From Guillardia theta CCMP2712 (Eukaryota; Protista; Cryptophyta), in assembly GCF_000315625.1 (NCBI RefSeq), contig NW_005434613.1, positions 430,809 to 494,808 of the forward strand: a stretch of DNA of 64,000 bases. The letters run 5' to 3'. The position numbers and the translations under genes are program-made. The notes below the pieces were generated by a model. That model was given only the letters and a program-made list of their open reading frames with translations. It was not told the origin of the DNA and did not search any database. This document shows, one piece after another, positions 57,259 to 64,000 of the stretch (within the stretch, counting starts at the first letter, position 1; each line of letters begins with the position of its first letter).

Positions 57259-58545
57259 GTCATCGTATTCTGCATCGTGCACTTCCTCCTCCTCCTTGCT
57301 GTCTTCATCATCGCATTCCGAATCCAGGATTCGATTAAACTCCGCATAATTACGATCAAAGTCTCCGGATGAAAGGCTATCTGCTTCGATGTCGCCTTCC
57401 GAGATCTCAATGACTTCTGTATCAAGTTCTGCCTCTCCACGCTCCGTCTCAGCGCTCTCCCTCTCTCTCTCAGCTCTCCTCCGCCCCCTCTCCGCCTGTA
57501 CTCGCTGCTTCTCCGCTCCCTCCCGCTTCTGCTCGCCGTCGACTCGCTGCTTCTCCGCTCCCTCCCGCTTCTGCTCGCCGTCGACTCGCTGCTTCTCCGC
57601 CTCCACCCGCTTCTGCTCGCCGTCGACTCGCTGCTTCTCCGCTCCCTCCCGCTTCTGCTCGCCGTCGACTCGCTGCTTCTCCGCCTCCACCCGCTTCTGC
57701 TCGCCGTCGACTCGCTGCTTCTCCGCCTCCACCCGCTTCTGCTCGCCGTCGACTCGCTGCTTCTCCGCTCCCTCCCGCTTCTGCTCGCCGTCGACTCGCT
57801 GCTTCTCCGCTCCCTCCCGCTTCTGCTCGCCGTCGACTCGCTGCTTCTCCGCTCCCTCCCGCTTCTGCTCGCCGTCGACTCGCTGCTTCTCCGCCTCCAC
57901 CCTCTTCTGCTCGCCGTCGACTCGCTGCTTCTCCGCCTCCACCCGCTTCTGCTCGCCGTCGACTCGCTGCTTCTCCGCTCCCTCCCGCTTCTGCTCGCCG
58001 TCGACTCGCTGCTTCTCCGCCTCCACCCGCTTCTGCTCACGGTCTTGTCGTTGTTGCTCTTGAGCATCTCGCTTGGTCTCTTGCGCTTGTCGGTGTTCGT
58101 CATGTTGCACCACTTGCCTCATCAATTCGGCCCAATGATTAACGCGATCGCTCAGTTCTTGACATTTTTCTTCGGCTTTTTGACATCTTTGCTCGGCGTC
58201 TGTACATCTTTTTTGCAATTCTTGCATTTCTTTCATGATCAACGAGTAGTTTATCTCCTGGTGTTGGCTGTAAATCTCGGGTTGCGCTTCAGGACGCACA
58301 GGTCTGGGGGGCTTGCATCCCCTCCTTGCAACGTTCGAGTACTGCATGTCACCCGTTTCAGTCTCGCTCGTTTGCCGCTCCTGAGTGTCAAGGTCCTCCA
58401 TCACTGAAAGTGGAAGCAGCCCAGCAGGCGAGTGGTTCTGGCCCGCTACATGCTCGTGGCGCCCAGCCGCTTCGTTGCGCACCTCCACAGGACATTGAGC
58501 AAGTGCTTGCTGACGCAAATCATGAAAAATTGACGAACTTGCCAT
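57109..58545 (-). CDS. Intronless coiled-coil protein with 13 x 14-aa repeats, poly-Asp tract and basic C-terminus
   Basis: MASSSIFHDL start at 58545; EQKR(VE/EG)AEKQRVDG x13; acidic tract; C-terminal RAKRRKT is NLS-like. Confidence 0.65.
57493..58038. repeat. Coding 42-bp minisatellite, 13 copies, two main variants
   Basis: 546 bp = 13 x 42. Protein-order pattern A B A A B B B A A B A B B (A = VE, B = EG). Confidence 0.95.
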
Positions 58546-59200
58546 ATCTGTCAGAGCAGTCAGTAAATTCGATTGAATCACTAGGGAAGCTGAGGTAGGA
58601 AACGACCAGCATTAAATTTAGATAAAAACGAAGCAGGCACTGCAGTCTGCTCTCTTCCCCTCTCCCTCTCCCTCTTCTTGTCTCTCTCCTTTTCACTCTC
58701 CCTCCTTCTCCCTCCCTCTTCCTCTCCTCCCTCCCTCCCTCTGCCTCCTCTCCCTGTCCCTCCCTGTCCCTCCCTGTCCCTCCCTGTCCCTCCCTGTCCC
58801 TTCCTGCCTGCCTGCAGTCGTCCTCTCTCCTGCCATCAGGCTATAGGTTCGTGGCAAAACTACCCCTACCTACCGACTGTGTAAAACCCCTACCCCCACA
58901 AAGCCGTACTTCTTATGGTACCCCTCATTATAAGTGAAAATACCCCACCCTTTGATAAGCCAAACTTTAGTGATTTACGTCAGACCCCAGCAGATCACTC
59001 CGTTCACTACCCCTACCAGCTCCAGCGGACAATCCCACAAAACATGGTGAAATTTCACAGTATATTTGAATTATTTCGTGAATATTTCGAATGTGATGCA
59101 GAATAAATGTCGTGGGGCATCAAACTCCTGCCGAAGCAACCAAAAAAAAAAACTTAACCTTTAATCGACAAAAGGACTCCCGAAGGAGTCCTGGACCAGC

Positions 59201-61334
59201 ATGACAGGGGTCATTGATAGGTTTCAATCACCCATCCAATGGGGCTGTATGAGGGTCTTAAAAAAGAAAAAAAAATCTTCCCGCCTTCCCGGAGTCCGAC
59301 GGAAAGTTTGTGGCTGCTCGTTTCATCTTTATTCAAAACCATTCACGAGAGTCGTCAAATGTGGGTTATACTCGAGACTCAAGGCAGAGAACAGATCGAT
59401 TTTAGACGTGATCGACAGATGGGTATTACATATCAGTCAGATCACATCAAGAGGCAGTATGATATTCAACTGTTTTCTGATATGGGGCAGGGATACAGGG
59501 AATTTACGATATGTAGTGGATGAAATCAAGAGAGCCAAATCGACCTTTTTCTGGAATGTTTTTACACTTGGAATGGAACAACATAGCCGTACAGATAACA
59601 AGTATCCAACTCTACAACGTTTCTGGTCAGAGAAAAGACATCTTTTCGTTGATTTATGTAGAATTCGAGGAGACTCGCAAGCTATTGTATTCGCTGCAAA
59701 TCAATATGGAACGAATTTCTACCAAGACCTGAAAGCAAATTTTACAAACCGATTGGAAAAGTTCATTGCCGAATTCTGCAAAGGAGAGTTACATATTAAC
59801 CATCAGCAAGAAATCGAAGACGTGAAGAATGTATTGTTTCAAAGGAAAGATTACGAGTTGAAGACAGAAGTGTTTAACAGGAATAATTCACAGCAGATAG
59901 GAACCTTCATCGACCATATGAAACAACTAATTGGATTATCGGGGTACGAAGATCTTTTTAGTTTCAAATATGACAAATTTGATCATAGGTTGCAGAAAAA
60001 TCTGTTTGAGATAATCGAGACACACATGTTCATGTTGAAGTTCTTCGAAGATCGTGGTCTCTCGAAAAAAACATTCAAGGCAGCACCAATGTCGAAATTC
60101 GGCAGAAAACATCTAACAATCGATAATGATGTGATGTATTACATTTTGAAAGAAGCGAACAGTTTGAAACCGGGAGAAGATAAAAAATCGTTCATGAGAA
60201 TAGATCAAACTTTGGAGAACTCTAAGAATTTCAGAAGGATTTTCGACTGTTCGAATCTGTTCAGAGATCAGAGAGAGGAGATTACAAGTATCACGACAGA
60301 CGGTGTATCGGTTTGTTTTCGCTTCACGTTAATTGTCAAAACAATCGATGGACTCGAACAGGAACCTTCATTGCGCACTACCAAATGGCTTGCCGATAGA
60401 AAAAGGGCTGAACGGAAATCGGCGAAGAAGATATCAATATCATACAAAGTATTACATGAAAATTCAGAATACCAAAGAGAGATCGAAGAATGTAAAAATT
60501 GCCCAAGGGTAATTGCGATCGACCCTGGGAGGAGCGTCATTATATCGGCCGTCGAACAATTCAGAGATGATCAACAAATAATCAGAAAAAGATTTCAGTT
60601 TTCGAGAAAACAATATTATCACGAGTCACATCTGAATCGCAATAAAAAGAAAAGAAAGACGTGGGATCAAGATATTCAATCGACATTGCACTATCTCAAG
60701 GGGTTCTCGAGTAAGTCTGGCGGCAGTCTATCAAGATTCGAAGACTATCTTCTTGCAGTTACAAGTCATTGGGAGGAGTTAACTTCGCATTATTCAAAGC
60801 GAAAATACGCCAGGATGAAATTCGACATCTACATTTCGAAACGAAAGTCAGTCGACAGGTTTATCCGTACAATGAAAGGAAAGGGAGAAATAGAACCTGT
60901 TATCGCATATGGAAATGCAAGGTTCCCGTCTACAGGACGTCGAGGAGAAAGGCCTGTACCGGTCAGGTGGATAAGAAGAAGATTCGAGAATCACTACAGA
61001 GTCGTAGATGTTGACGAATACCGTACTACCAAGTGCTGTAACGATTGTGGTTCTGAGCTCGATGTGCTTCGACGGATTGAAAATACAGGGAAAGAACCAG
61101 ACGAGACCTGTAGGTTGAAAACAAGGAAAAGTGAAGTACGAGGATTGAAATTTTGCAGATCATCGAGGTAATGTCAAGTTTTGTATACTCCTGTAATTCA
61201 CCTTTTCATCTAACTGTTATCGTGACAGCTGTAAAGGAAAGCCGATCAAATCCAGGGACTTGAATGCTGCACTGAATATACTCACTTGTTTCAATGTGTT
61301 TCCTGAAAGACCGAATCACCTACGTCGCCCCTGA
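59201..61334 (+). CDS. Fz1: Fanzor1 RNA-guided DNA endonuclease (TnpB/Cas12 family), 690 aa; exons 59201-61167 and 61229-61334
   Basis: SITTDGVSV; RuvC-I VIAIDPGRSVII (D441); IAYGNARF (Gly at the canonical Glu position); shifted catalytic Glu in VDEYRTTKCCNDC (E606); Zn finger CCNDC...CRSS|SC; RuvC-III SRDLNAALNI (D666) in exon 2; N-terminal KKKKK NLS-like motif. Confidence 0.95.
61168..61228 (+). other. 61-bp phase-2 spliceosomal intron in the Fanzor gene
   Basis: AG|GTAATG donor, CTAAC branch site at 61210-61214, ACAG| acceptor. Splicing restores the frame through RuvC-III to TGA at 61332-61334. Confidence 0.92.
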
Positions 61335-61548
61335 GGTGAATTCAATGATTGTTGTCGCCCCCTCCCTACCCAGACTGCGTCCCTCGGGACTCGATGCCTA
61401 ATTCCCTGCCTGCCTGCCTGCCCGGTGCCTGCCTCCATTATGATCCGATGTTTACGACATGTGATCATTGAAGTGACTGACTGGCATCATTTGGTAGGAT
61501 TCATGTAAGGCTCCAACAACATCCGAAGACAATTTGGCAAAAAAAAAC

Positions 61549-61726
61549 AACTGCCGTTGTATGACGGAGAGTCGCGGCTCTCAATCATACGACGGCAGTT
61601 CTGTGCGAAAACTTAGTTCGTCGTTCAGAAGGGTATTCACATATTCCGTCACATCATGAGGGAGAGTACCCGTGGTAGATAGATTCGTGGCGTTTATCTA
61701 TTAAAGTTACAAAAAACAAGTTTCAC
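61549..61726 (+). ncRNA. Candidate Fanzor omegaRNA (scaffold ~61549-61706 plus flank-derived guide from ~61707)
   Basis: Hairpin 1 at 61549-61600 (16-bp stem with one G.U plus a GAGAG/CTCTC upper stem); hairpin 2 GGGTATTC/GAGTACCC at 61631-61671; hairpin 3 TAGATAGA/TTTATCTA at 61676-61700. All non-Watson-Crick stem pairs are G.U on the + strand. Lies downstream of the ORF and abuts the element end. Confidence 0.7.
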
Positions 61727-63093
61727 TTAACCGCCGGGGTGGTTCCTATCGTGAGTCTACCCCCCGGGCCCCGGGCTGAATCTTCAGTGTCGCTCAGTTG
61801 TTCCCCCGGGCCCGAGGTGGGGGATGAGGGGCACAAATCCGAGTGGGGATGAGGGCCCAGCGCGCACATAAGGAGACGACGGGTGGTCTGCAAATGGAGG
61901 CGGATCTATGGTAAGAAAGAGGGGTAGTATACGAGGGGGGTGGAGACAGATTTGTATCTTGGGGGTGGGGTATTTGAGCATTGGGGTAGAGGTCCAAATG
62001 GAGTACATGGAAGGGGGTGAAAGCAGAGCATTCATAGTACCCGAAATAGTCTGAAGAGGGGGTACTAGGGAGAGAGGGTCTGTTCATCAGGGGTACCAGT
62101 GTTTTTTTTGAGGGAAGGGGGTACATAGAAAAGCATGATCGAGAAGGTCTGGCATAGGGGGTGGGGTAGAAAGGAGAGGGGTGGGGGTAGGGGGTCACGA
62201 GGTTGGAGGCCGCGAGGAGAGGCCGCCATGATGAAGAAGGTGAGGGCGACAAAAATGAGAAGAAGATGAGAAGATGAGAAGATGAGAAGACGATCAGTTG
62301 ATATAATGATGATGTGATGATGCTGTACGTCATGATGGCGAAGATATGTCGATTAGAGGAGGTGGAGCTAGCGCTTGATATGAAAATTGTATCGTACAAT
62401 GGTGGAAGCGATAGATACCAGTCGGTTTTACCAGAAGTGAAGAGAGTGTAAAAGTAGATGATCGATTCCTGTTGTAACAAGAGTAAGAATGAGAACCAAG
62501 TGACGCAAAGGCTAAGTTGACAGCAAAGAAAGGGTACATAGACATCTATTATAGAGTTTGTGAGCATGACGTCATTGGGGGTAGTTTGTTTAAGTCAAGG
62601 AGTACAGGGACGTGTGAGAGTCGCTGGCAAAGTATTTGAAGTTAAGAGAAGTCAGTTTCATGTGATGTATCAAAGAACATTCGTTTCCATGATCCACTGG
62701 AACAGCACTATGGTTATGAAGTCAGATGTCACTTGGAAAGTCTCTGTGCCTAATGGGATGGAGAGAGGGGAGGAGATGAGAATTTAGATCGATGAAATGT
62801 TGTTGGAATGAGTGAGTACTTTATGAAGCTATCGATAGGTTATGTTCTCAGATGCATCTGATGGATGGTGGTGTTGATGCTTGAAGATGGGATTTGTTTT
62901 TGTGGACCATGGAGTGATACTCCATGATGGCGATGAGAGGTCGATATGAGAGTCCTTTGATCTGTCAATGGTGTACGCAGCTTAGTAGCAATGTCGACAG
63001 TAGAAGCAGCCGGTAGGAGCAGCCGGTAGGAGCAGCCGGTACCAGTGAAGCAGTAGTGACAAGCAAGGAAGTCAAAGGATGTAACACGATAAG

Positions 63094-64000
63094 ATGAGAA
63101 AGTGGAAGTGGGTTTGGAATTGTGCCTGGTTAACATAGACGAGGAAAGGAGAGGACAGTTGCTTGCTGTTTTTCGTCTCATCTTCTTCTTGGCTCCTCCT
63201 GACTCCTGCCACCAGTTGTGTCTCTTTGCTGCCGCTGTCGCATCCGCCGCAGCCTTCGCTCCTGGACTTCCGTCCGCCCAGCGCGTTCCTAGCAAGGCTG
63301 CGCTGGTACTGGAGGGAGAAGGGAAAGAAAGGGAGGAGGGAAGCGATGGGGGAGGGGAAGGAGGAAGGGAGGAGGAGGAATGAGGATGATTGAAGTGCGC
63401 AGACCAACCTTCACATGGGCAAGAACATCTACGAGAAGAAGGATATCGTCAAGCAGGTTTCCGAGGACCTCGCCAGCTCTCAGTTCATCTTCTCCACGGA
63501 AATGAAGCAGATCACTGTCCCCCAGGTGAGGAGCGAGAGATGGACGGAAGGGCGGTAGGGAGGGGGGGTGGGGTCGTCGCTCCTCGGTCGTCTCCTCATG
63601 GCCCCTCAGATCCGTGAGCTTCGCTGGAGTCTCCCGGAGGACTCTAAGGCCTCCTGCATCAAGAACCGCCTCCTCAAGGTAGGAGGAGGAGGAGGAGGAG
63701 GAGGAGGAGGAGGAGGCTCACTGCAAGACAGAGAGCGGCGGCGGGAACCGAGGTGGGAGGTTGGTGAAGGATGCGGCTAAGGGATCGGACAACCTCTGGG
63801 TGTTCGTTGGAAGTGACATCAAGGTACTTTCATAGTCTCTCCTCTTACCTTCTCCTCGTTTGTTTCCCTCTTTTCCCGACCAACCTCCCCATGAGTACCC
63901 GATGGTACGACCTCTCTTCGACCGACTCTTTGCCGTTGGTACTCGCCCTCGAACTGGCACCCATCAGGTCCTGAAGACCTCCTGGATCCTGGAAACAATG
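63094..64000 (+). CDS. rpl10: Nucleus-encoded plastid 50S ribosomal protein L10 (partial, runs off the window)
   Basis: Bipartite leader LCLFAAAVASAAA-FAPG; MGKNIYEKKDIVKQVSEDLASSQFIFSTEMKQITVPQ|IRELRWSLPEDSKASCIKNRLLK...NLWVFVGSDIK matches the uL10 N-terminus. Start exon uncertain. Confidence 0.75.

Follow-up and report, generated by a model that had tools for sequence, protein, structure and literature searches.

The 64,000-nucleotide stretch of Guillardia theta CCMP2712 DNA analysed here (the window) carries on its + strand an element of ~2.55 kb (59158-61700), one copy of a repeated family, hereafter family 1, whose other members measure ~2.72 kb. The gene within it consists of two coding exons. 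Exon 1 (59330-61167) specifies the RuvC-I motif IAIDPGR, the RuvC-II motif DEYRTT and the first CxxC, and exon 2 (61229-61334) contributes the zinc-finger cysteines, the RuvC-III motif SRDLNAALNI and the stop codon (61332-61334). Between them lies a spliceosomal GT..AG intron of 61 nt (61168-61228), the spliced joint of which is present in contigs of runs X2 and X3. Without splicing, the open reading frame (59201-61171) ends at a stop codon that falls within this intron, and removal of the intron restores the second half of the zinc finger together with RuvC-III. A second GT..AG intron, of 162 nt (61336-61497) and attested by one contig joint in run X2, resides in the 3′UTR, beginning 1 nt past the stop codon. 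Its splicing leaves ~52 nt between the stop codon and the hairpin block described below. The same intron holds a (CTGC)n-like tract, which reaches several hundred bases in a decayed copy on contig C35 (L069) that has lost its tail.

The window copy differs from all other copies by a 168-bp in-frame deletion at 59329, whereby the canonical start MPRKRKR..., an NLS-like sequence, was lost and the reading frame became fused to an upstream ATG at 59201, so that the long open reading frame of the window is partly fortuitous. At least four other copies retain an open exon 1 of 642 codons. Judged from its sequence, the encoded protein is a Fanzor1 nuclease that has a zinc finger and the complete set of three RuvC motifs. 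In a phmmer comparison, the family 1 protein matched SpuFz1 (8GKH) with an E-value of 9.5e-7, and a clade profile built from this protein plus its relatives matched, among the PDB entries, SpuFz1 (1e-20), PpFz1 (1e-19) and GtFz1 (3.5e-6), and no others. A protein search for relatives of family 1 recovered only one near-identical protein and two distant ones, and a scan of the JGI metagenomes returned none; outside the G. theta genome, neither search yielded a relative.

At least 14 copies of family 1, 98.8-100% identical (95-100% in the 3′ region), were found in the G. theta CCMP2712 genome assembly (87.1 Mb in 669 contigs). Homology among the copies starts at TTAA-CCTTTAATCG, with the left TTAA at 59154-59157 and the element proper from 59158, and stops right after ...GTTTATCTA-TTAA (...TCTA-TTAA), the right TTAA occupying 61701-61704. 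Because the copies diverge immediately beyond 61701-61704, the structured block terminates at the element's right end, on the strand of the open reading frame. A previous reading of the DNA letters, without database searches (the sequence-only reading), had the block extend from 61549 to 61706; its hairpin region stands, but the last two nucleotides (61705-61706) belong to the flank. The same tetranucleotide is found at both ends of all nine copies with independent flanks, as TTAA/TTAA in six and TTAT/TTAT in three; the flanks of two ENA contigs (L081 and L082), which are possible assembly chimeras, were left out. TTAT is found in two 5′UTR sublineages, one of which also includes TTAA copies. 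Considering the matched tetranucleotides and the occurrence of TTAT in two sublineages, a true 4-bp TTAA/TTAT target-site duplication is the simplest reading of these sequences. In the window, the TTAA at either end of the element would accordingly be one copy of the duplication, the left one being in addition a candidate TAM. Of the 11 genomic copies whose 5′ junction is known, 10 have TTAA or TTAT in front of the left end, and 8 of 12 copies have a C before the left TTAA; the right TTAA is preceded by A.

Two observations concern the surroundings of the copies. The copies on contigs C29 (L057) and C30 (L061) have exactly 66 nt of 3′ flank in common, a sequence found nowhere else, and different 5′ flanks, the 5′ junction of the C30 copy being AAGTT rather than TTAW; the common flank could reflect co-mobilisation, ectopic recombination or misassembly. 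Upstream of the element in the window, near 58646-58838, lies a dispersed repeat of ~190 nt with dozens of genomic copies of 71-84% identity.

Terminal inverted repeats are absent from the element: the highest-scoring local alignment of the left end with the reverse complement of the right end falls short of the mean obtained with shuffles. Nor is there a transposase inside the 2.55-2.72 kb unit. Compared with a piggyBac/Sola-like cut-and-paste transposon that duplicates TTAA, the element agrees in its 4-bp duplication but lacks the terminal inverted repeats. The left end does possess a subterminal GC-rich hairpin, GGACTCC-CGAA-GGAGTCC (59174-59191, + strand), with a perfect 7-bp stem located 17 nt inside the element. 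This hairpin is identical in most copies, with a single stem substitution in the copy on contig C111.

The last ~155 nt before the right end, on the sense strand, are occupied by a block of hairpins, which starts at 61549, just behind an A-tract (61539-61547). The three hairpins put forward in the sequence-only reading are present, with small corrections of their coordinates (the 3′ arm of H1 is shifted by one base), the A-tract and the stop codon lie where that reading had placed them, and RNA folding adds a fourth hairpin, H1b. H1, the most stable element of the block, pairs 61549-61564 with 61585-61600 in an outer stem of 16 bp with one U.G pair, and contains an inner stem of 6 bp (61567-72/61577-82). 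It is followed by H1b (61600-61629), a weaker and imperfect hairpin of the MFE structure, and by H2 (61631-61671), with an 8-bp stem (61631-61638/61664-61671) that includes one U.G pair and a branched apex. The terminal hairpin, H3 (61673-61703), has a core stem (61676-61683/61693-61700) that can be extended to 12 bp with four G.U pairs (61673-84/61692-703). The three outermost pairs of the extended stem use the TTA of the right TTAA (61701-61703 with 61673-61675). In a genome-wide pattern search, the H3 stems were unchanged at 16 right ends, and the controls gave 0 matches.

As + strand RNA (158 nt), the block folds with -68.5 kcal/mol, compared with -39.3 +/- 3.8 kcal/mol in dinucleotide shuffles (z -7.73), none of 200 shuffles being as good; thus, the shuffles exclude that the hairpin block arose by chance. 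The - strand folds with -51.0 kcal/mol (z -5.47). The + strand fold is better by 17.5 kcal/mol because of its G.U pairs, eight of which are part of the MFE structure, as anticipated in the earlier proposal that the wobble pairs favour the + strand. Pair probabilities of the stems are mostly above 0.9 in four sequence contexts, with the block embedded in 230-570 nt; that of H3 drops to ~0.5 in one of the four. The 214 nt that separate the stop codon from the block (61335-61548) are unstructured (z -0.46), and the structured domain therefore truly begins near 61549. The placement of the bound RNA at 61335-61500, which had been named as an outcome that would speak against the block, is disfavoured, since that stretch is unstructured and partly spliced out. 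An Rfam scan of 58000-64000 matched no family at E<=1.

The pseudoknot or alternative fold suggested between TGACGGA and TCCGTCA does not fare equally well. The complementarity exists, but 37% of shuffled versions of the block hold at least one 7-mer pair of this kind, which is the chance level, and the pairing competes with H1, so that it carries no weight as an argument for a pseudoknot. A second possible loop-loop match, of 6 bp, joins 61647-61652 with 61687-61692.

In an alignment of 16 sequences, H1 and H3 are invariant, the stems of H1 being identical in all copies, and informative stem substitutions are lacking. The variation in the block comprises the length of the A-tract, one substitution before H1, one substitution in H1b in a single copy, a 1-nt deletion and insertions of +6 and +10 nt in the apex of H2 (four sequences carry the insertions), and a 15-nt deletion in a decaying copy on contig C38. 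Compared by region, the block shows no less diversity than the adjacent intron or the UTR ahead of it; 5′ regions, polluted by truncated copies, were excluded from this alignment. The copies on contigs C1, C6, C36 and C67 are all degenerate. In those on C1, C6 and C36, H3 is kept, and H1 and the 5′ arm of H2 are gone. The C1 copy is devoid of the H1 outer stem but retains the 3′ arm of H2 and the whole of H3, in which substitutions are confined to the loop, and H3 of the C6 copy has one A-to-G change that preserves a G.U pair. Conservation of the stems across copies, which had been proposed as a check, thus holds for H1 and H3 in the 16 sequences but is limited to H3 in the decayed ones. The related claim that the G.U pairs reflect selection on RNA structure is unsupported, given 16 near-identical copies and decayed copies that keep only H3. 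On contig C36 (78961-78991; L019), H3 plus TTAA stands as a solo fragment of 31 nt with no other element sequence around it, which may represent an extreme 5′ truncation or a footprint.

The block is covered by contigs from three studies, whose runs are probably transcriptomes; the contigs are strandless. One X2 contig spans 61496-61705 and continues through 193 nt of flank specific to the copy on contig C40; judging by this sequence, it would represent the read-through past the right end that guide production needs. The spliced joint of the coding intron in X2 and X3 indicates that the gene is transcribed and the intron real, and the GT..AG joints of both introns imply that + strand transcripts exist, with sense splicing seen up to 61498. 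One raw-read RNA run, of which ~6% was sampled and which derives from a standard cDNA library, yielded no reads on 61040-61699. Splice joints are also found on the minus strand, at 61229-61285 in contigs of three runs (GTGAGT...TTTACAG, read as CT..AC on the + strand) and at 60829-60896 in an X2 contig and in raw reads of X16, about 8 of which support the antisense joints. These canonical minus-strand GT..AG joints indicate that spliced antisense RNA runs through the 3′ portion of the Fanzor gene, which may have a bearing on element silencing.

Family 1 is accompanied in the G. theta genome by further Fanzor1 families. Family 2, exemplified by the copy on contig C78 (48134-50200), has at least nine near-identical copies (L070, L073-L080, L083-L089) with an intron-less open reading frame of 642 aa, the C-terminal half of which is 48% identical to the family 1 protein. 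Its tail, 161 nt from the stop codon to the right end, is significantly structured, more so as + strand RNA (z -5.4) than as - strand RNA (z -3.6), opens with a hairpin of ~50 nt located ~150 nt from the end, and terminates in GTGTCGTTTAGCTAATA. Among three informative copies, the left end of family 2 appears to lie at GTGACACACTATGACC, with GGTTAA in front of it in two. The two tails can be aligned solely in a terminal motif of ~20 nt, TTyGTGkCGTTTAkCTAwTA, which in family 2 is predicted to be single-stranded or part of a long-range stem, whereas in family 1 it lies within the local hairpin H3. The family 2 tail further differs in following directly after the stop codon, and RNAalifold detected no structure common to the two families (-4 kcal/mol). 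A third Fanzor1 family, 34-40% identical, is represented on contigs C72 (356300-359400; L071) and C201 (3300-6400; L072). Homology between its copies stops ~45 nt past the stop codon, and the tails are unalignable with family 1; consequently, an omegaRNA of this family, should one exist, must lie partly within the 3′-terminal coding sequence, as in GtFz1.

Families 1 and 2 are both uncharacterised Fanzor1 families. That family 1 might be the published GtFz1 locus was considered and ruled out: neither its RNA nor its protein strings occur in the supplements of Saito 2023 (PMC10432273) or Xu 2024 (PMC11423790), the G. theta locus file of the former study lists scaffolds 7 and 348 only (PMC10432273), and the GtFz1 locus lies elsewhere, since the initial 30 nt of its published omegaRNA match position 896451 of contig C7, in exact agreement with the published coordinate.

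In the characterised TnpB and Fanzor systems, the nuclease strand also encodes the scaffold of the guide RNA, which extends to the element's right end; the guide is drawn from the adjoining flank, and the TAM corresponds to the motif of the left flank (PMC10432273; PMC11423790). Because its terminus coincides precisely with the right end of a Fanzor element, the block at 61549-61704 is most likely an omegaRNA scaffold, and we consider it probable that it serves the previously uncharacterised Fanzor1 family described here. The earlier reading of the block as a predicted omegaRNA scaffold is thereby strengthened by its position, length and strand asymmetry, by the TAM-like TTAA, by the structured tail of the sister family and by the RNA contigs, but not with respect to its 5′ boundary at 61549, the postulated selection or the pseudoknot. 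Under the omegaRNA reading, + strand transcription of the element would run through the right end, the structured last ~155 nt (H1, H1b, H2 and H3) would bind the Fanzor1 protein encoded just upstream, and host-flank sequence transcribed beyond it, ~15-20 nt starting at 61705, would serve as the guide. The resulting RNP would cut an insertion site that is still empty, where the flank sequence adjoins a TTAA-type TAM. We infer RNA accumulation, the position of the 5′ end, protein binding and guided cleavage. The putative native guide at 61705-61724 follows from the TnpB/Fanzor paradigm with an assumed length, and it is from this point that flanks differ between copies. The candidate boundary between scaffold and guide is at 61700 or at 61704. 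With a TAM of plain TTAA and a guide beginning at 61705, the nuclease would also be able to cleave the occupied locus, given that TTAA precedes the guide match there as well; the C before the left TTAA, as opposed to the A before the right one, might matter for such self-targeting.

A close parallel in terms of architecture is GtFz1 from the same alga, with an experimentally defined omegaRNA of 150-153 nt that comprises four stem-loops, SL1-SL4 (PMC10432273; PMC11423790; PDB 9CER-9CET), a TTAAN TAM (PMC10432273) and loci at which Saito et al. found neither inverted repeats nor a transposase (PMC10432273). Family 1 resembles it in having a sense-strand RNA block of ~150 nt with about four stem-loops that reaches the right end, TTAA as the TAM or left-flank motif, and no inverted repeats or transposase within the repeated unit; the GtFz1 omegaRNA folds with a comparable z-score, -5.7 against -7.7 for the block. 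However, the two RNAs have no detectable sequence similarity, and the GtFz1 omegaRNA overlaps the last 17 codons of its gene, whereas the family 1 block starts 215 nt past the stop codon (~52 nt once spliced). The three solved Fanzor1 omegaRNAs have an SL1 of 7 bp (PMC11423790), which contacts the RuvC and TNB domains; a 7-bp 5′ hairpin is not found in the family 1 block, in which H1 has 16+6 bp, including the 16-bp outer stem, and H2 has 8 bp. The proteins, too, are distant (profile E-value 3.5e-6), and the RuvC-III residue N658 of GtFz1 contrasts with the canonical D in family 1.

In protein sequence, family 1 is closer to the fungal SpuFz1 and PpFz1 (PDB 8GKH, 9CEU-9CF3), the nearest solved structures, the omegaRNAs of which likewise lie downstream of the open reading frame at the 3′ end of the element and take the guide from the flank. 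By contrast, their scaffolds consist of ~75 nt with two stems rather than ~155 nt, and the SpuFz1 element has inverted repeats and a CATA TAM in place of TTAA/TTAT flanks and ends free of inverted repeats. With the TnpB omegaRNA (reRNA) of IS200/IS605 elements such as ISDra2, the block has in common the 3′-end scaffold, the guide drawn from the flank and a TAM that corresponds to the left-flank sequence. TnpB is, however, a bacterial system in which the RNA overlaps the open reading frame and contains a pseudoknot and the element makes no target duplication, whereas the family 1 element is eukaryotic, contains introns and is flanked by a 4-bp TTAA/TTAT duplication.

This affinity to SpuFz1 and PpFz1 bears on how much of the block would be engaged by the protein. 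Given that the scaffolds of its nearest relatives are ~75 nt long, H2 and H3 (61631-61704, ~74 nt) may constitute the protein-bound core, with H1 and H1b serving as a 5′ extension that the protein can do without, as a processing signal or as a stabiliser of the 3′UTR. We judge this narrower scaffold to be unlikely. The profile scores for SpuFz1 and PpFz1 (1e-20 and 1e-19) far surpass that for GtFz1 (3.5e-6), the fungal scaffolds combine a 7-bp SL1 with one further stem much as the 8-bp H2 is combined with H3 within 74 nt, and the decayed C1 copy has dispensed with the H1 outer stem while keeping the 3′ arm of H2 and H3. Nevertheless, structured tails of ~150-160 nt are present in both family 2 and GtFz1, H1 is the most stable hairpin and invariant in all copies, and the structured domain starts sharply at 61549, all of which argues against the narrower scaffold.

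Subterminal hairpins in IS200/IS605 elements and the 3′ hairpin of Helitrons are DNA signals recognised by transposases. It is conceivable, if improbable, that the hairpins of family 1 likewise mark the right end at the DNA level for an unknown trans-acting transposase and have no role in a guide RNA. Such signals would be consistent with the lack of terminal inverted repeats, with the presence of hairpins near both termini (the subterminal one at 59174-59191 on the left and H3 at the extreme right), with the restriction of the tail sequence common to family 2 to the terminal ~20 nt, and with the better-than-chance folding of the - strand (z -5.5). Yet a 4-bp target duplication is unexpected for HUH or Helitron-type mechanisms, the + strand owes a 17.5 kcal/mol advantage to its G.U pairs, and 155 nt exceed the need of a terminal recognition site. 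Moreover, end signals and omegaRNA overlap in TnpB systems, so that a DNA-level function is compatible with the omegaRNA scaffold, and as the sole explanation of the block it is unlikely. Least probable of all, and very much so, is an ordinary mRNA 3′UTR structure (for stability, 3′-end formation or regulation) or a part of the antisense transcript, either of them without interaction with the nuclease: the block does lie inside a transcribed 3′UTR, is known from longer RNA contigs and not as a discrete small RNA, and belongs to a gene crossed in its 3′ part by spliced antisense transcripts, but the structure stops right at the boundary of the element, has equivalents in the sister family and in the validated GtFz1, and occupies the position from which all tested Fanzor and TnpB nucleases draw their guide RNA.

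Fanzors are eukaryotic RNA-guided DNA nucleases that are now under development as compact genome editors, and, to our knowledge, only a few of their omegaRNAs have been experimentally defined. If the block amounts to no more than a predicted omegaRNA for a further Fanzor family, it represents an incremental gain. Family 1 would be a second Fanzor1 family in G. theta, seemingly a young and active one, as suggested by the presence of at least 14 copies of ~99% identity, several with open frames. It combines a canonical catalytic triad and a protein closer to SpuFz1 and PpFz1 with a delimited right end, candidate scaffold, guide start and TAM, and the published yeast RNP workflow would be directly applicable to it. 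The matched TTAA/TTAT duplications also bear on how Fanzor loci that have neither inverted repeats nor a transposase move. Taken as a whole, the features of the locus would describe a Fanzor1 element with a genuine TTAA/TTAT duplication and no terminal inverted repeats, in which the terminal hairpin of the omegaRNA is completed by duplicated target bases, the scaffold-guide junction is partly derived from the target, the TAM is the duplication itself and the omegaRNA originates from the 3′UTR of a spliced mRNA; we advance this composite picture as a tentative one, unlikely to be right in its entirety. Should it be true, how an occupied locus with TTAA before the guide match escapes self-cleavage would become a question, and an RNA-guided nuclease would be linked to precise, TTAA-restoring excision.
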